From NCBI RefSeq assembly GCF_000315625.1, contig NW_005434618.1, positions 382,155 through 446,154 of the forward strand: a stretch of 64,000 nucleotides of DNA, in the 5' to 3' direction. A program made the translations under genes and the position numbers. Below, in pieces: positions 3,070 through 38,899 of the stretch. Below the pieces are notes generated by a model. It did no database searches. It saw only the letters and a program-made list of their open reading frames with translations, and was not told where the DNA came from. Numbering within the stretch: the stretch's first letter is position 1; the number at the start of each line of letters is the position of its first letter. The DNA is from Guillardia theta CCMP2712 (taxonomy: Eukaryota; Protista; Cryptophyta).

Positions 3070-5350
3070 ATGAGTGAAAGCGTGAAGGAGCCGACGGTTG
3101 AGTCGCTGCTCAAGCAGGTATTGCATAGCATTTCCATCGTCCTTGTTCATTGCAGTATCCCAAATCTCTCGTCTCTGATTGTTGCTCTTCATCTAGCTGG
3201 AGGACGAGAAGCGTAAGAATGCTTCACTGGAAAGGTAATCTGGGATATTTGCACCTTGAGAAGTTAACAGTTGTACAGAAACAATGCCGATTTGAAGAGG
3301 AAGATGGGGATTCAACAATCCCAAATTGAAGCGGAAGCCGAGAGAATCACGAATAAGCTGATGTAGCATGAAAGCATTTGTAAGCCTTGCAAGCTGAATT
3401 ATTCACAGGCTCCGAATCGAAGAAATCGAGAAGGAGAAAGCTACGATGCGTCTTCAGGTACGCATCTTCCTCATTGCACCTTCCCATCATCTGAAGATAA
3501 CTACAGGTTGAAGCCGAAGAGCGAAGGCTTGAGCATGAGAAGAAAGAGCTGGAGACAAAATTACAACAGAGTGCTGCTCACCTTGCAAGGTAGTATCGTC
3601 AAGGGCAATAATCCCCTGAATCTTACTTTGCAATTATCAAGGCTCAAACACGAAAAAGAGGCTCTTGTGCGCCAGGTTAAGATTAAAAAGTGTCCAAATT
3701 GTGATATTGACATCGTCAAACTATAGGTAGAGCAGGAAGAAGAATTCCTCACCAACACTCTGCAGCACAAGCTCGCCAAGGTTCCACTCTCTTCTTTCTG
3801 TTTGCACAAGTCAAAATCTTAATGTATGCAATGCTAGGTTCTGGCAGAAAAAGTAGAGATAGAGAACGAGCTTGAGCAGGAGCAAGAATACATCTCCAAC
3901 AGACTGCAGAAGCAAGTTGTTGACACGCTCAAAGAGAAGCAAGATATGGAACGCCGACTCGAAGAGGAGAAGGCCAAGGTAGTTGTTTGTGATTCATTTC
4001 ATTAGAAGCTCACTCTTGTATTTGCAATGCAGGTCCTATCTATGGAAGAAGAAAAGAAGAAGTTAGCTCGACAGTTACAATCCCTGCAGTACGAAACCTA
4101 CCTAAGCATTAAGTGCTGGTGGTTGATCAGTGTTGGTGGCAGGCTCAATATTGAGGTGGAAGAAGAGAGAATTTCAAACACCTTGGGCAAGACTGTGGAC
4201 CAAATCAAGAGTGAGAAGGTATATGGACATTGCGAATGCCCTTGAAGAGTGCTGATGCTCGAAACAGGAAGCGCTGATTCAGAAGCTTGAAAAGGAGAAG
4301 GCCACAGCTTCAGCGCTCAGCAGGTACTGATGTAAAAAGCTTTTGTATGCTTTTTAAAGCGGTGATTTGCAAAGGGAGCACGAGCTGCAGCGTCTGGAGT
4401 TGAAAAAGCTTCAGGGTACAAACTACGTCATGCAACAAAGGATTGCCAAGGAGTCAAAACGGCTCACTGAGATGCAACGGGAGAAGTCTCTGATCGCACA
4501 GGTTGACTGCAATTCCCATCGCTTTGTCACGATACTTACAAGCTTGTCGATTTGCTTCCCTTTCAGAGACTCGAGGCTGAGTGGGAACGCCATTTCAACA
4601 TGATGGTTCGCGAAAGATCCTGTTATCCTGCTTTCAATCGTGCCACCTCTCTGGAGAAGTGGAACCTTGCCGAGATGGAGGCTGTTGACCTCTGCGACAA
4701 TAGCTGGAACAGTGTGGATCCGGACGGTGATGTGCTGGGAGAATTGAGTCTCACTCCGAGAATTTTCCGGGAGAAACGAAGTGAGTTGATGCTTAATCAT
4801 AGTCCAACTTTGCAGTTGACCTTATTCTTTGCTCGAATCAACAGGAAGCGGCAAGTGGGAGTCCCAGAGTTTGCCCTCTTTCAGCCCGAGATTGAGTCCC
4901 TATCCTTCACCTCCGGCCACACCTTACAGCTCAAGGTCCAGATCTCCGGCCCTGAATCGATCCCGTGAGTATCAATGTGCCTTGTCTCGGAGCATTTACA
5001 AACAGATGCAGGTGATATAACTCCCACGGGCTCCCGTTCGCAATCGCCATCAGCACGATCATCTCACAGCAGGTTGAAAGTTTTGATCATCTACATCCCA
5101 TCAGTCTTACTTGTATCTGCAGCATTGTGTCGGCAGCTGAAACTGCAGGACACATTTCCTTTCCGACAAAGATGGTTTGTTCTTGAGTTTCGTCTTCAAA
5201 CTCGTCTAAAATTTCAATTTGCAGACTGGAAGTCTGCATAGGCTCACTACGAACCCGCTCGTTACAACCTTTCCGCAACATCCTTAACGGCTCGGTTGAA
5301 ATCCATTCGTGTGACTCAGTTGGTCCCGTGTACTCTAGATGGCTGATAAC
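3070..5350 (+). CDS. CCDC6/DUF2046-like coiled-coil protein, multi-exon (3' end approximate)
   Basis: Short exons separated by ~45-50 bp GT-AG introns splice to ...VEQEEEFLTNTLQHKLAK/VLAEKVEIENELEQEQEYISNRLQKQ..., resembling the repeated EQEEEFxxNxL motif of CCDC6. ATG at 3070. Confidence 0.7.
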
Positions 5351-33083: not shown

Positions 33084-33893
33084 AAAAAAATGCATCTGAA
33101 ACTTGCCACGCGGCCCATGCTTCCGTGCCATCGGATCATTTTATTGTGCCCTCAGGCCCTGGTGCCGCCACGGTACGGTACGCCGCCGTAGTACCGGCGG
33201 GCGGCCCGGCGCCCTGAGCTGAGCCTCAGACTACTGGCAGGAGAGTTTCTGACTGGCACTGCGGCAAAGCTGGCATGCGATCCATCAGTCCGACGGTCAC
33301 GGGTGACGGTGCCACTGTCCGGCACTGCCATCCCGGTGTAGTACACGCCCGGGGCCGGGCCGCGGGCGGCGCGCGGCCACTGCCGGCGCATGAGACGGTC
33401 ACCGCCTTGAAGTTGGACGGTCTGCCACTATCCTGGCAGGGCCTCGCCGGAGAGCAGCGAGCTGTTCCGCTGGGCCGCCTCCGAGACTCTGATGGAGCGG
33501 CAGTTCCAAGTTCCAGCAGGAGCGGCTGCGCGGGACTGAGGGGGCCCGGCCGGGGGGGCGGACTCCGCCGCCGGGAGGCGCCGGGAGACGGGCACGGAGG
33601 GGGAGGAGGGGGGGAGGGGGAGCTGAGACCGTCCGGCGGCCGCGCGCCGGGGTGAGCGAGGTGAGCTACGCTGGACTCCGACTACTTCCCCGGCGGCAAG
33701 ACTGGCGGCGGCTTCTTCAAGTACGACGAGGGCGGCGTGGGGGAAGGAGGAGGAGGAGAAGGAGGAGGAGGAGGAGGAGGAGCAGCGGCAGTGGAAGGCC
33801 GGGAGCGACTCAGCCTGGGCATGCGGAGCCGGGCCTGTGACTCACTGTCAGGCTCCGAGGCTCGCCGGTCACCAGGGCCCGGGACGGCGGAGG

Positions 33894-33928
33894 AGCGCTG
33901 CAGCGATGGGTTTTGAGGGGCGGGGAGC
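33894..33928 (+). repeat. 35-bp direct repeat, left copy
   Basis: agcgctgcagcgatgggttttgaggggcggggagc, identical to 38865-38899. Confidence 0.95.
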
Positions 33929-34160
33929 ATGCCGTTTACTTTCAGGCCTTTCGTTAATTTGGCACTTAAATTTTTCGGTAGAGTCTTTTTTTTTAATAGG
34001 CGTGCTATTTTGAGAAACGAGCCAGAAACCCCGCTTAATAGTACCCATACGTTTTAGTTTATTTCTACACTCCTCTTTAAAAGTTATTTTAACAGTGTAC
34101 CGGCATATACACTTTCACAGTACCACTCTAGTTGCAATCCTCCTTGCCTGGACGGGCAAA

Positions 34161-35318
34161 ATGGCGGCGCAATCAGGGCGGCCACCGTCGTCAAGGGCTG
34201 CCTCATCGCTCGGCATTGCCAAAAGGAGGAGATTGGAGCAAAGGGAACAAGTTGATCCTCTTCATGATTTGCAGGAGATACATCCAAGAATTCCAGGCAA
34301 TCTTGCAACACCGTTGTTCCTTGCAGCAAATGCCTTCGATCATTCTGTGCACTATGAATTACAACACCACGTTAAAGGTTTAGACATGACATTCAATCTG
34401 GTACCATGTCTTGGTGTGAGGTTTACGGATGTCAATGGGAAATTTCGAACTGGAATCATCCGAAAAGTTTCAGAAAAATCTGTCAGTGTGTTCATCTTGT
34501 ATACCAAACAAACAATGGAAGAGGTTAGACAGAATGTACAATTCAATTCAACGTCGAACAGAATGATCAACTCATTATTACCCTTCCAGTGTTTTCAGAG
34601 TGTGTATACTGATGAAGTTCCTGTTGACGATATCTGTGGAGTTTTTCAAATCAACTTCGAGCAATTCTCTGGAAGGGGGACATTGTCACATATGCAGACC
34701 TCTGACAGTCTCCCTTGCATGTTGTGTGTTGGATACTTATATTTCTATGCCAATCCCAAGAATCGAAAGGAAGAATGTCAGGTTCTTTATTTCAAGAAGC
34801 TGGATGTGTCATTGGACATGTTGCGCTACTATTTTTTGAACATCAGAAAACAAACTGATTTCTTCCGTCTCAACATCGATCTGCAGAAGATTCGGACTAC
34901 TATGGTTAACTGGTTTATCAAACGTGGGAAGCCCTTCTTGAAACCCCGGATGAAACGTGTCGAATTTGATGTGGATCTAGACGAAATCACATCATTCCTG
35001 CTTCTTTTCAAACACCTGCAACCGGACGACTGCAACGAAAACATCTGTTGTACAGGGTTGAATGGGAAAGGTCAGTGCAGTTGGACCATCAGTACATCAC
35101 TCTTACAGAACCCTGTCATTAACAGAGAATTTCCTGTGCCTTTCAAAAATGAACCCTACATGTTAGAACCTGGATCAGGTTCGTTGTATTTCGAGGGCCC
35201 ACTGACAGTCACCTTGAAACGAAATCAGAGGACACAATACACGTGCATCTCTTTCAAGTTCGAAAGAATGGTACGATTGTGCATGTTTCACACAGAGATT
35301 TGGAAGCATCCAGATTAA
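34161..35318 (+). CDS. Element ORF-A, ~385 aa, with BAH-domain-like region
   Basis: Intronless ORF, first ATG 34161. Segment FRTGIIRKV...VSVFILYT...QCFQSVYTDEVPVDDICGVFQI resembles the BAH consensus ELFxSxxxDxIPVxxIxGKCxV. The domain call is by eye. Confidence 0.65.
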   Translation: MAAQSGRPPSSRAASSLGIAKRRRLEQREQVDPLHDLQEIHPRIPGNLATPLFLAANAFDHSVHYELQHHVKGLDMTFNLVPCLGVRFTDVNGKFRTGIIRKVSEKSVSVFILYTKQTMEEVRQNVQFNSTSNRMINSLLPFQCFQSVYTDEVPVDDICGVFQINFEQFSGRGTLSHMQTSDSLPCMLCVGYLYFYANPKNRKEECQVLYFKKLDVSLDMLRYYFLNIRKQTDFFRLNIDLQKIRTTMVNWFIKRGKPFLKPRMKRVEFDVDLDEITSFLLLFKHLQPDDCNENICCTGLNGKGQCSWTISTSLLQNPVINREFPVPFKNEPYMLEPGSGSLYFEGPLTVTLKRNQRTQYTCISFKFERMVRLCMFHTEIWKHPD

Positions 35319-35337
35319 ACGCGAGTTTACTCAGACA

Positions 35338-38300
35338 TTAATTTACACAAGGATAACTTTGAAGGAGCAGCCACAATAAAGTGAAGTGTGCTCGAACCGA
35401 ATTGTTGAATTTCTTCTTGTCTGCATTGCGTGAAGGTCCATGACTACCGCATGGACAGTGCATATCCCACACATGGTCAAGTTGCCCGTTAGATGCTGCA
35501 GCAGCTTTCTTCTTCTCCGATCCAATGTAGCTGTTCCCGATCATGGCAGCAGCTCGATATGCATCTCTTCCCTGAAGTTGATGTCGGTGCTCGATGCACG
35601 ACATGTTCAATAGTCCCAGCTGAATGCCATATTTCTCGTAGAAATGTACAAACTGATCGCCCACATGCCCTGACATCATGCTGTGCAGATAGAAGGACTG
35701 CAGAAGTCTCGCTTGTCCGATTAATCTGACTAACTTGAAAGCAAACCCCCTAATCTTGAAAGGAAGTGCTTTGACGTCTTCCTTACTGATATTTGCATGA
35801 TGCTGAGTTTGCAGAATGTACAAAATACTCTTCAATTCCAAAATGGCCTCCTGCCAAAGAAGCTGTTTGTCTCTATCAGGCACCAGCAGTTGAATGATGT
35901 CAGGTAACACATCAAGTAACTCATCACACTGTTTACCATTCAACTGCCTGCTGAATTCCTGCAGTCTGTTTTCACTCAAGTGAATGTGAACATTCTTCAC
36001 CAAGAAAAGTTGGTTGACCCTTGTCAGCTTGGCCTTGTTGTCAGCTAGTGAATGAATGAACTTGATGATCGTATTTGAAATTCTGAGTTTCAGATGCAAA
36101 GAACAATAAACAAATTCCAAAGCAGACATGTTCAATTCCCGTAGCTGGTCGTATTCCCGATTGATTGGAATGTAACGCTGGCAAGCAATTTTCGTACCTG
36201 CTGGAATTGGACTTTGAGGATTTGCCTGACAAAACCGTATCGCATTCTGATTAGCTTCTGAACGCATAATTGCAAAGTCCTGCATGTTGGTTGTATCGAA
36301 CAATTCTGGGCAGCCCCTGCTATTCGGAGCGTTAACTAAAGAGTTTAGCTGTTGCATATCCCTGGGGTACAATTGAAACAAATCGCACAAACCTGCCCAG
36401 GTAATTTGCTGCTCAGTACCAACTGTGTAACATGTAAAAAATTTTGCCTGTTGTTTAGTTTGGAGCTGTTCGTTGCAATGAATGCAGAATCGTCCGGTCT
36501 GATCGCTTCTCCCTCCTTCACGCAAATATGCCCAGTGCCCAGCAAGATCAGCTCGAAAAAGAAATTCGATATCAATTCGACTAGATGGAGTCTTGCCTTG
36601 ATCAGTCAGTTGACTGCCCCGAAGAGCCTTTCCATTGTGAATATGAATTCCTTGATTCAACAGGAATTGTATCTCTCTCATGTAATACTGCCAAAAATTG
36701 TTTTGCAGATTCGTGCTGTTGTCTTTGTCTGGAATAATCATGAGAGTAACCAGGCTGAGGGAGTTACGCATTCGTGTCTCATGTCTCTGTTGCCATTCCA
36801 CTGAATTATTCTGTGTGTGATAGGGCAGAATACTCAAAGTTATCTCGGTGTGCTTTTTGTCACTGCTTGAACTCTTTGTAAGCTTTGTACAATCACTATT
36901 GATAGTCACTATCAATCGCTCTTCTCCATGTAAGCCCAGCATGTCGATTATTTTTTCAACTGACCTCACAAGGCTTGCTCCATGCGCTCCATCAACAGTA
37001 CAAAAAACCTCCAAGTCGGAGCGTAATCCTTTAGACATCAACACCCTTTGACGGCAAAGTTTTGATACTGGTGGAGCCATTCCTCTACTACGTTTGCAGA
37101 TTGTCCATATCTTCTTCCAGGTTCGTGTTGAAATTCTGGCTCTGGATAATCCAGTTGCGCCCTCCAACACGTTGGGCAAGAATGGTTTAGTGATGTATCT
37201 CAATTGATTGCGCAAATGAACATCACTCTCCAATGCATGACTGAGAAATTCTTTGATTCGCGGATGCTTCATTGTCCCTATGATATATTGTCGCAACTGA
37301 CTCTCTGGACGTGCCGACCTTGGTTTTCGACCCCGTCGAGGAGCAATGTCAATGTTGTGATCATGAGAGACTGGCAGGCTCTGATGGAAATGTTCTGAAC
37401 AGATGCTGTCGCCACGGTGGCCCGAGCTCGTCGCATGCTCACAAGCGCCGTCGCCATCATGATGACTCGAGCTCGCCGCATGCTCACAAGCGCCGTCGCC
37501 ATCATGATGACTCGAGCTCGCCGCATGCTCACAAACGCCGTCGCCATCATGATGACTCGAGCTCGCCGCATGCTCACAAACGCCGTCGCCATCATGATGA
37601 CTCGATATCGCCGCATGCTCACAAGCGCCGTCGCCAGCATGATGACTCGAGCTCGCCGCATGCTCACAAACGCTGTCACCATCTGCGACTGTCGGAAACT
37701 CCACATCGAAATTGCCTGGCATCATTGATTCATCGAAATCATGATCAAAATCTCCATCGGATAATTCTGAATCATCGCTATCATCAATTGGCATTTCCGA
37801 CCCCACGAAATCATCGTCCAGATTTGAATTTTGATCACATACAGCCTCTTCTGAAGCATCTTGACTGTCTTCTCTTCCGCATGCATCTTGCCTTTTCTCC
37901 TCAGGAAAGAAGTACAGCAAATATTCGAATTTCACGGCACGGCATTGTCTTACTATTCCGAAACATCGGCCAATGCCTGAGAAAAATGCTTCCGCGATAG
38001 GTTCAAGCTCAGCGAGAATCCTATCCAACACCTTCTTCTGAATGTCCGCCTGTTTGATCCCACGGAAAGTGGATGGATTATTTGGTAATGCTTGTGGATT
38101 GCAGTTTTCCCTCTCGCTTGCACAAAATTCATTCCAAATTTCACGAAATGACCTGACATGATCACGACCAGGTTTCTTCTTGAATTTATGTCCAAACGAA
38201 TTCAAATACTTGCAAACATCACCTTGTCCTTTGTTTGGCCCACTTTCGCGAACAAAACCTTCACTCAAAGCAATCGACTCAAGAACACGCAAGGCATCAT

Positions 38301-38457
38301 CATAGATGCGAATGCGAGAGAAAGTCCTTCCCGAGCCATTGCTCTCATCACTGTTTCGTGTTGCTTGAGGAAACAATTGCACGGGTGGTATCGATGCTTG
38401 ATGATCTCCAGTTTGAGTCTGTTGTCTGGTATTCGATAATATGTCACAATAACTCAT
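35338..38457 (-). CDS. Element ORF-B, RAG1/Transib-related RNase H-fold DDE transposase
   Basis: Ordered motifs (ORF-track numbering): TINSD533, FLFRAD648, FC669IHC672, CSLH799LKLRI, LNGKQC, FYLH936SMMSGH942, SCIE967HRH. First in-frame ATG at 38457; the track starts at TTG 38490. Confidence 0.8.
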   Translation of the reverse strand: MSYCDILSNTRQQTQTGDHQASIPPVQLFPQATRNSDESNGSGRTFSRIRIYDDALRVLESIALSEGFVRESGPNKGQGDVCKYLNSFGHKFKKKPGRDHVRSFREIWNEFCASERENCNPQALPNNPSTFRGIKQADIQKKVLDRILAELEPIAEAFFSGIGRCFGIVRQCRAVKFEYLLYFFPEEKRQDACGREDSQDASEEAVCDQNSNLDDDFVGSEMPIDDSDDSELSDGDFDHDFDESMMPGNFDVEFPTVADGDSVCEHAASSSHHAGDGACEHAAISSHHDGDGVCEHAASSSHHDGDGVCEHAASSSHHDGDGACEHAASSSHHDGDGACEHATSSGHRGDSICSEHFHQSLPVSHDHNIDIAPRRGRKPRSARPESQLRQYIIGTMKHPRIKEFLSHALESDVHLRNQLRYITKPFLPNVLEGATGLSRARISTRTWKKIWTICKRSRGMAPPVSKLCRQRVLMSKGLRSDLEVFCTVDGAHGASLVRSVEKIIDMLGLHGEERLIVTINSDCTKLTKSSSSDKKHTEITLSILPYHTQNNSVEWQQRHETRMRNSLSLVTLMIIPDKDNSTNLQNNFWQYYMREIQFLLNQGIHIHNGKALRGSQLTDQGKTPSSRIDIEFLFRADLAGHWAYLREGGRSDQTGRFCIHCNEQLQTKQQAKFFTCYTVGTEQQITWAGLCDLFQLYPRDMQQLNSLVNAPNSRGCPELFDTTNMQDFAIMRSEANQNAIRFCQANPQSPIPAGTKIACQRYIPINREYDQLRELNMSALEFVYCSLHLKLRISNTIIKFIHSLADNKAKLTRVNQLFLVKNVHIHLSENRLQEFSRQLNGKQCDELLDVLPDIIQLLVPDRDKQLLWQEAILELKSILYILQTQHHANISKEDVKALPFKIRGFAFKLVRLIGQARLLQSFYLHSMMSGHVGDQFVHFYEKYGIQLGLLNMSCIEHRHQLQGRDAYRAAAMIGNSYIGSEKKKAAAASNGQLDHVWDMHCPCGSHGPSRNADKKKFNNSVRAHFTLLWLLLQSYPCVN
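37420..37690 (-). repeat. 45-bp coding tandem repeat, ~6 copies (DGDGVCEHAASSSHH)
   Basis: Visible in both the DNA and the ORF-B translation. Confidence 0.95.
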
Positions 38458-38864
38458 TTCTTGCTCTAAACTTTCAAATTTTGTGTACAAGTATTCATAT
38501 CAGCGCGTGCGTGGAGGGGCCGCCGCGATTCCTCTGTGGATTCAAATATCCTCTGTGAGGAGATAAGGAGGGGGTAGGGTGGTTGGGGGGGGAACTTCTG
38601 TACCATGCAACCTCTCTTTTGTACCAATATGTTTTCATACAGTACAATCTATACTACCATGTATGTGATGGGTAAAACTAAAATTGCAGTACCTCTAAAA
38701 CCAAGGCGGGGTAAGGGTTCCACGCCAGGGGAATTCAAATCACCCCACCCCGCTTTCGCCCAGTCTCTCTACCCCCCTTTGATTGGTGAAAACAGGGGGT
38801 AGTCAGCAGGGAGTGTATATACGGACCCCATGTGAACCCCAATAAAAGTAGAAAAAAAAAGACC

Positions 38865-38899
38865 AGCGCTGCAGCGATGGGTTTTGAGGGGCGGGGAGC
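38865..38899 (+). repeat. 35-bp direct repeat, right copy
   Basis: Identical to 33894-33928 and preceded by the A-rich tract aataaaagtagaaaaaaaaagacc. Confidence 0.95.

Follow-up and report, generated by a model that had tools for sequence, protein, structure and literature searches.

A multi-copy DNA transposon of the cryptophyte Guillardia theta pairs a candidate CMCT-clade transposase with a putative BAH-type partner protein

We analyzed a 64,000-nucleotide stretch of the genome of Guillardia theta CCMP2712 (contig C56:382155-446154; referred to as the window, whose positions are used throughout). Positions 33928-38866 are one copy of a multi-copy DNA transposon of this alga, carrying two convergent open reading frames (ORFs), ORF-A and ORF-B. 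We consider it probable that the element is an autonomous-type, two-gene cut-and-paste transposon bounded by terminal inverted repeats (TIRs), in which ORF-B would be a transposase of the CMCT clade, the group that includes EnSpm/CACTA and Transib/RAG1, and ORF-A an obligate accessory protein of BAH type. Judged from structural models, what appears to be new is a cryptophyte lineage of the CMCT clade that combines the complete core architecture of RAG1/Transib with a putatively obligate BAH-type partner, a fairly unusual combination.

The insert is one copy of a multi-copy element

A preliminary description of this locus had reported a lower-GC, intronless insert with two convergent ORFs whose stop codons lie 19 bp apart. 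Coordinates, GC content and uninterrupted frames agree with this description. GC content is 0.40-0.49 inside the insert (33.9-38.9 kb), compared with 0.63-0.68 in the left and 0.51-0.55 in the right neighboring sequence. The frame of ORF-A extends over 34095-35318 on the forward strand, with its first ATG at 34161, from which 385 amino acids are encoded. The frame of ORF-B (35338-38490, reverse strand) comprises 1050 codons from a TTG, or 1039 amino acids from the first ATG at 38457; residue numbers of ORF-B count from the TTG start. The 19 bp between the stops are positions 35319-35337, and both frames are uninterrupted in the window copy.

33928-38866, forward strand: transposon copy of 4939 bp, truncated at its right end; boundaries ambiguous by 1-2 bp at the overlap with a flanking repeat
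34161-35318, forward strand: ORF-A, putative accessory protein
35338-38490, reverse strand: ORF-B, putative DDE transposase

The genome searched (87.1 Mb, 669 contigs) contains 76 matches to the C-terminal 620 amino acids of ORF-B, including a 100% identical copy on contig C17, and ORF-B paralogues at 25-58% identity carry long open frames. At the nucleotide level, the window copy and its twin at C17:452-5345 are 99.7% identical across exactly 33928-38866. In ten further copies, homology begins at element position 1 and continues 38 bp past position 4939. Searches with the end sequences detected many more copies, at least 10 of which are internally deleted to ~2.0-2.4 kb and share both termini. 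These non-autonomous derivatives (L014-L021, L023; for example G000:C184:85882-88289) carry both TIRs and retain ~540 bp at the left end, ~340 bp at the right end and part of the C-terminal region of ORF-B; the ORF-B part is 80-93% identical and contains stops.

ORF-B has a predicted RAG1/Transib-type catalytic core

The preliminary description had compared a series of ORF-B residues with the catalytic and zinc-binding residues of RAG1. All of them (D533, D648, C669, C672, H799, G852 of an LNG motif, H936, H942 and E967) are present at the named positions. We aligned 30 ORF-B sequences, down to 17-22% identity. D648, C669, C672, R778, C796, H799, G852, Y934, H936 and H942 are invariant in this alignment, and D533, D590, E967 and H970 are at least 90% conserved.

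AlphaFold2 (AF2), run on the 30-sequence alignment, produced a model of the 620-residue ORF-B core with a predicted local distance difference test score (pLDDT) of 88.4 and a predicted template modeling score (pTM) of 0.88. In the numbering of the core model, D533 is located on strand 95-106, D648 follows directly after strand 207-216, and E967 opens helix 534-569.

35341-37200, reverse strand: predicted catalytic core of ORF-B (amino acids 431-1050), RAG1/Transib-type architecture
36892-36894, reverse strand: D533, candidate for the first catalytic Asp, located in the RNase H sheet (first long strand)
36547-36549, reverse strand: D648, candidate second catalytic Asp (RADLAG), right after a strand
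36475-36486, reverse strand: C669-x2-C672, candidate zinc ligands (ZnC2-like)
35665-35685, reverse strand: H936-x5-H942, candidate zinc ligands (ZnH2-like)
35590-35592, reverse strand: E967, candidate catalytic Glu, opening the long C-terminal helix

The preliminary description had proposed that this core would resemble RAG1 and Transib, and the fold searches bear this out. In a Foldseek search of the PDB with the core model, all 49 matches at E<=1e-3 were RAG1, BbRAGL or HzTransib. The best match was 6oet_A (E 1.4e-9), and the next family was Hermes (E 0.04). Structural alignment with VIA-align gave the following results:

HzTransib: Z 19.2, 417 residues, root mean square deviation 4.1, covering HzTransib 21-476
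RAG1: Z 18-19, 430-440 residues aligned, covering RAG1 457-1002
BbRAGL: Z 17.7
P element transposase: Z 11.3
ISCth4: Z 8.5
Hermes: Z ~7

The aligned part of RAG1 (457-1002) is what we take to be DDBD through preR, RNH, ZnC2 and ZnH2 to CTD. Structure-aligned identity of the ORF-B core to HzTransib, RAG1 and BbRAGL is 11-14%. On the basis of the model, ORF-B appears to be a DDE transposase with an RNase H domain and the candidate triad D533/D648/E967. The large insertion between D648 and E967, with its predicted zinc module of C669/C672 and H936/H942, would correspond to the RAG1/Transib/CMCT architecture.

ORF-B probably represents a new CMCT-clade branch

Pfam and PDB sequence searches with both ORFs returned no match. 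The Pfam RAG1 profile (PF12940) detected nothing in ORF-B at E<=1 and nothing in the genome at E<=10, and the RAG1, DUF1280 and Transposase_21 profiles gave no meaningful matches in the whole genome. Neither Transposase_21 (PF02992) nor DUF1258 nor Plavaka matched ORF-B, DUF1280 matched neither ORF-B nor its Guillardia paralogues, and in the N-terminal half of ORF-B neither a RING nor a Chapa zinc finger was detected by Pfam. The ORF-B family profile and two core fragments found nothing among the PDB sequences, and the family profile finds no RAG1. An exhaustive ORF-B profile search of 1.84 billion representatives yielded 95 matches; the close ones, where named, are from Guillardia, and the distant ones include the green alga Cymbomonas and metagenome proteins. 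A word-indexed protein search with ORF-B recovered Hanusia phi and Guillardia proteins only. Pfam scans of 48 distant ORF-B relatives revealed none with a clear Pfam transposase domain. The matches were weak: DUF1280 in 5 (best E 6e-4, the inspected ones spanning only ~30 residues), RAG1 in 1 (E 0.011) and Transposase_21 in none, besides LysM-like matches.

The CMCT clade comprises EnSpm/CACTA, Mirage, Chapaev, Transib (RAG1), Plavaka, ESTA and Lanisha (Kojima 2025, PMC12730594). C(2)C and H(3-4)H motifs and 5'-CA..TG-3' termini are common to the whole clade, and its target site duplications (TSDs) are 2-5 bp long (PMC12730594). DUF1280 has been equated with Chapaev and grouped with RAG1 (Majorek 2014, PMC3985635), and Chapaev has been counted within the Transib superfamily (Kapitonov and Koonin 2015, PMC4411706). 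The Kojima reference tree (Repbase as of March 2019) holds no cryptophyte family (PMC12730594). In the literature, we found nothing on Guillardia with Transib or EnSpm, nor on BAH-encoding DNA transposons.

ORF-B contains the C(2)C and His-pair motifs of the clade between the second Asp and the Glu, with a His spacing of 5, and the family has 5'-CA..TG-3' termini. Motif match and fold thus indicate membership of the broad CMCT clade, not of Transib proper. The safe placement of the ORF-B lineage, as suggested by predicted fold, motifs and termini, is as a new branch of the CMCT clade whose sequence no Pfam profile recognizes. It differs from the described clade members in that no clade Pfam model recognizes ORF-B, no TSD is visible, and a conserved BAH-type second gene is not described in PMC12730594.

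The preliminary description had gone further and assigned the element to the RAG/Transib clade. The core architecture stands, and ORF-B shares with Transib, RAG1 and BbRAGL the whole core fold and the motif order D, D, CxxC, C/DxxH, HxnH, E. The assignment is not specific, as EnSpm- and DUF1280-type models fit equally and no Pfam RAG1, Chapaev or EnSpm profile matches. Several features argue against Transib membership: the absence of a profile match, the His pair spaced by x5 instead of x4 as in Transib/RAG1, termini of CATGCCG... rather than the heptamer-like CACAATG/recombination signal sequence (RSS) type, and the lack of a 5-bp TSD. As for Chapaev, DUF1280-carrying clusters are among the nearest to ORF-B (fold TM 0.60, language-model features 0.95), whereas ORF-B and its paralogues have no DUF1280 match and no detected Chapa domain.

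With respect to the side of the clade, language-model features of ORF-B reached 0.92-0.95 with RAG1, Transib-like and DUF1280 clusters (165-186 shared features), compared with 0.83-0.89 (110-133 shared features) with Transposase_21, Plavaka and DUF1258 clusters. Taking these features and the weak DUF1280 and RAG1 matches of the relatives as leads, we lean slightly towards a position of the ORF-B lineage nearer to Transib/RAG1/Chapaev than to EnSpm.

Alternatively, ORF-B might belong to the EnSpm/CACTA-type (CMC) transposases as a divergent member and resemble RAG1 only through an ancient CMCT-wide architecture, with no special Transib/RAG1 affinity. We regard this as unlikely, though of real weight. 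In the ESM Atlas, three Transposase_21 (EnSpm) cluster sets matched the ORF-B core with TM 0.58-0.62, the same as DUF1280-carrying clusters (0.60) and arthropod RAG1_RNase_H (Transib-like) clusters and vertebrate RAG1 (0.60); rotifer, fungal and plant clusters without names were matched as well. The PDB is not known to contain a structure from EnSpm, Mirage or Chapaev. The PDB ranking cannot discriminate because these sister superfamilies are missing from it, and a best PDB match to RAG1 alone therefore does not mean 'RAG/Transib'. Some EnSpm elements encode a second protein. The motifs and the CA..TG termini are also clade-wide (PMC12730594). On the other hand, the Transposase_21, DUF1258 and Plavaka profiles do not match ORF-B, Transposase_21 and Plavaka rank clearly below the RAG1, Transib-like and DUF1280 clusters in the language-model features, and the family has neither CACTA termini nor a visible 3-bp TSD. 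The likeness to EnSpm/CACTA is one of fold only.

ORF-A is a co-diverging partner with a predicted BAH-type fold

A word-indexed search with ORF-A found no match among 5.8 billion proteins, and the Atlas feature search returned only uninformative nematode F-box clusters (<=0.85). Within the family, convergent ORF-A homologues (30-50% identity) lie beside ORF-B homologues in at least nine diverged genomic copies. At the metagenome locus L041, whose ORF-B shares only 24% identity, a convergent ORF-A homologue was detected by hmmsearch with E 1e-34. The partner is also present in three of four further environmental contigs (L042, L043, L045), the fourth ending too early. The convergent pair is thus kept in at least nine diverged genomic copies and four environmental contigs. 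The preliminary description had spoken of a candidate new two-gene family, for which 'family' is a fair term; the data stop short of a new superfamily.

The trees of ORF-A and ORF-B contain the same three clades with similar branch lengths. In an unsaturated pair, the ratio of nonsynonymous to synonymous substitution rates (dN/dS) was 0.19 for ORF-A and 0.32 for ORF-B; in saturated pairs, the proportion of nonsynonymous differences (pN) was far below that of synonymous differences (pS). Judged from these sequence comparisons, ORF-A appears to be linked to ORF-B, co-diverging with it and under purifying selection in every subfamily and in the environmental contigs.

The most distant metagenomic ORF-B relatives (E 1e-11 to 1e-7) have convergent downstream genes at L039:6521-8056 and L040:7168-9821. 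These genes gave no match to the ORF-A profile and may belong to a different partner family.

The AF2 model of ORF-A consists of a BAH domain, a helical pair and an alpha/beta domain.

34338-34799, forward strand: predicted BAH-type beta domain (ORF-A residues ~60-213; AF2 model, Foldseek, VIA and Atlas)

Foldseek matched residues ~60-213 to the BAH domains of Sir3, ORC1, AIPP3 and PBRM1 (E 2e-5 to 1e-3). In an unbiased VIA search of 48,161 chains, the top 19 matches were all BAH domains (Z 5.9-9.6, 91-134 residues), followed by matches with Z <=4.8. BAH clusters of the Atlas also matched ORF-A, one with TM 0.67 by target. The C-terminal third of ORF-A had no clear fold match, and no Kelch propeller matched the model in the PDB or the Atlas. 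Residues ~60-213 thus appear, on the model, to form a BAH-type fold and not a RAG2 propeller, in line with the earlier view that the partner is not RAG2.

ORF-A would resemble RAG2 in being encoded by the element alongside the transposase and co-evolving with it, and in carrying a chromatin/histone reader module, a BAH domain in place of the PHD finger of RAG2. It differs from RAG2 in having neither Kelch propeller nor PHD, and the pair differs accordingly from RAG1/RAGL systems, whose partner is a Kelch propeller with PHD. RAGL elements such as ProtoRAG likewise consist of two convergent genes. The En/Spm TnpA, MuDR MURB and Harbinger Myb-like proteins are also accessory; ORF-A is unrelated to them in sequence and fold.

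Could ORF-A be a passenger that plays no role in transposition, either a chromatin gene captured from the host or a selfish addition? BAH domains are commonplace in the chromatin proteins of hosts, CMCT-clade transposons have captured other genes, such as TET/JBP in fungi (PMC12730594), and complex prediction, with a poorly folded ORF-A, is no evidence for contact between the two proteins, nor against it. Nevertheless, we consider a passenger role improbable, given that ORF-A is convergent in every subfamily and in environmental relatives in which ORF-B identity is as low as 24%, that in topology and branch lengths its tree agrees with that of ORF-B, that it is under purifying selection, and that no homologue is detectable outside these elements among the proteins searched.

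The family has short TIRs, and the window copy has lost its right end

Alignment of copies showed that the family termini are ~12-bp inverted repeats, with CATGCCGTTCAC at the left end and GTGAACGGCATG, its reverse complement, at the right end. Other subfamilies start with CATAGCGTTGAC (CATAGCG...), or end in ...CAGAATG or ...CAATATG. Because CAT...ATG termini recur in other subfamilies, they appear from the sequences to be a family trait.

33928-33939, forward strand: left TIR, with window sequence CATGCCGTTTAC and family consensus CATGCCGTTCAC; other copies end in GTGAACGGCATG
33894-33928, no strand: left copy of a perfect 35-bp direct repeat; flanking and host-derived, not in the element shared with other copies
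38865-38899, no strand: right copy of the 35-bp repeat, occupying the place of the element's last 38 bp, including the right TIR

Ten other copies end in a stretch of 38 bp, right TIR included, that the window copy is missing, so the element is not 'apparently intact', as it had been called. The 35-bp flank is found at only these two places in the genome. The repeat was considered as the normal TSD of the family and rejected: every other copy is without it, which also means that it does not represent the family's normal mode, and here it coincides with the missing right TIR. We infer an aberrant one-ended insertion or repair event with nicks ~35 bp apart. The A-rich 3' region was likewise considered as a retroposon tail and rejected, as the true end is a TIR located 38 bp further on.

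The 5-bp TSD typical of RAG1/Transib was not found outside the CATG termini in the nine two-ended copies. A duplication of 2-4 bp could be hidden within the palindromic CATG; L021, which is inserted in a tandem repeat, mildly favors the CATG as part of the element (one insertion). RSS-heptamer-like CACAATG/CACAGTG termini are not present, only CA..TG being common to the family ends. The claim of 'different ends' therefore holds insofar as the ends are not of the RSS-heptamer type; they are otherwise ordinary short TIRs. Overall, the preliminary description was right in outline and overreached on clade assignment, intactness and ends.

Two flanks resemble element ends. Directly after the right TIR of the C17 twin (L013:5384-5410, G000:C17), the flank resembles the element 5' end at ~18/24 bases, with the CATG shared. 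In the window, ~19-20/29 bases of the 35-bp flank agree with the missing 3' terminus. The likeness might stem from a preference for end-like target sequence, from old remnants or from chance.

Probable transcripts cover both frames

Contigs of probable RNA runs from three studies cover 34140-38624 with no joints, leaving the termini and flanks uncovered. This interval starts shortly before the ORF-A ATG and ends ~170 nt upstream of that of ORF-B, a pattern that weakly favors transcripts over genomic DNA. Variants in these contigs partly match the C17 copy. With only 19 bp between the stops, the mRNAs of ORF-A and ORF-B must overlap at their 3' ends.

At 38342-38344, ~115 nt inside ORF-B from the ATG, contigs of runs X2 and X4 leave the genome sequence, each with a different continuation; run X1 is colinear to 38624. 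Alternative 5' exons, chimeric transcripts or other copies may account for this departure.

That the pair represents domesticated host genes rather than a mobile element, as the two intact and apparently transcribed frames (in runs guessed to be RNA) and the missing TIR of the window copy might suggest, is highly improbable in view of the many dispersed copies, the near-identical twins at unrelated loci, the defined TIRs, the many internally deleted derivatives and the GC content differing from the surroundings.

Proposed mechanism and its weight

By analogy with known transposases, ORF-B would bind the ~12-bp TIRs (CATGCCGTTCAC), synapse two ends, cut and integrate. RAG and Transib form hairpins on the flanking DNA. 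ORF-A would act as an obligate accessory that tethers the transposase to chromatin or gates and licenses it there, a role functionally analogous to that of RAG2 with its PHD finger, yet fulfilled by an unrelated protein. Because its right TIR is lost, the window copy probably cannot move by itself, though both frames are kept. It could supply the proteins in trans to the intact C17 twin and to the 10 or more non-autonomous 2-2.4-kb derivatives.

A number of results weigh against this interpretation of the element. ORF-B has no sequence-level tie to any described transposase family (Pfam, PDB and genome profile searches). The ESM Atlas fit of its core is equal for several groups (TM 0.58-0.65), EnSpm-type models being as good as RAG1, so that the side of the clade rests on the language-model features. 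The AF2 model of ORF-A, made from eight sequences, is of moderate quality (pLDDT 71), and the Pfam BAH profile (PF01426) does not match ORF-A at E<=1. Complex prediction with the ORF-B core and ORF-A 48-385 scored 0.00, single sequences having been folded and ORF-A having folded poorly, a result that counts neither for nor against contact. No TSD is seen, no direct repeats of 2-10 bp abutting the termini in the nine two-ended copies. Finally, the expression runs are presumed rather than known to be RNA, and the single run of certain RNA origin gave 6 reads.

A more specific proposal, which we put forward tentatively and consider doubtful, is that ORF-B represents a deep RAG1/Transib-side cryptophyte lineage that has evolved or inherited an obligate BAH reader subunit licensing or targeting cleavage and integration, perhaps without a conventional TSD.

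RAG1-RAG2 is the textbook domesticated two-subunit transposase, and the origin of the dependence of a RAG1-type enzyme on a chromatin-reading partner is still open. The cryptophyte lineage would be an independent case, far from animals, in which a RAG1-fold transposase and an unrelated protein of reader type have stayed paired. If the BAH reader is indeed an obligate subunit, the element would provide a functional parallel to RAG1-RAG2 outside animals, and 'transposase plus histone-reading partner' would be a recurrent or ancestral solution in the CMCT clade. An intact twin, non-autonomous substrates and probable transcripts make the partner question open to experiment. The findings would also extend the CMCT clade to cryptophytes by a branch that escapes the current profiles, and they provide sequences for better ones.

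Additional features of the insert and its copies

The N-terminal half of ORF-B contains an in-frame tandem repeat.

37368-37727, reverse strand: 45-bp tandem repeat encoding 15-amino acid units rich in His, Asp and Ser

The window copy and its C17 twin differ by one unit; because these copies are 99.7% identical, the array is evolving fast.

In L010 (G000:C72:445201-449254), an ORF-B homologue of 53-58% identity is split into two matches ~2.7 kb apart and sits within very long open frames in several frames, which points to an inserted low-complexity or repeat sequence. At 33573-33799 in the window, immediately to the left of the transposon insertion, lies a GGA/GAG-rich, microsatellite-like stretch; similar stretches are present at dozens of loci in the genome.

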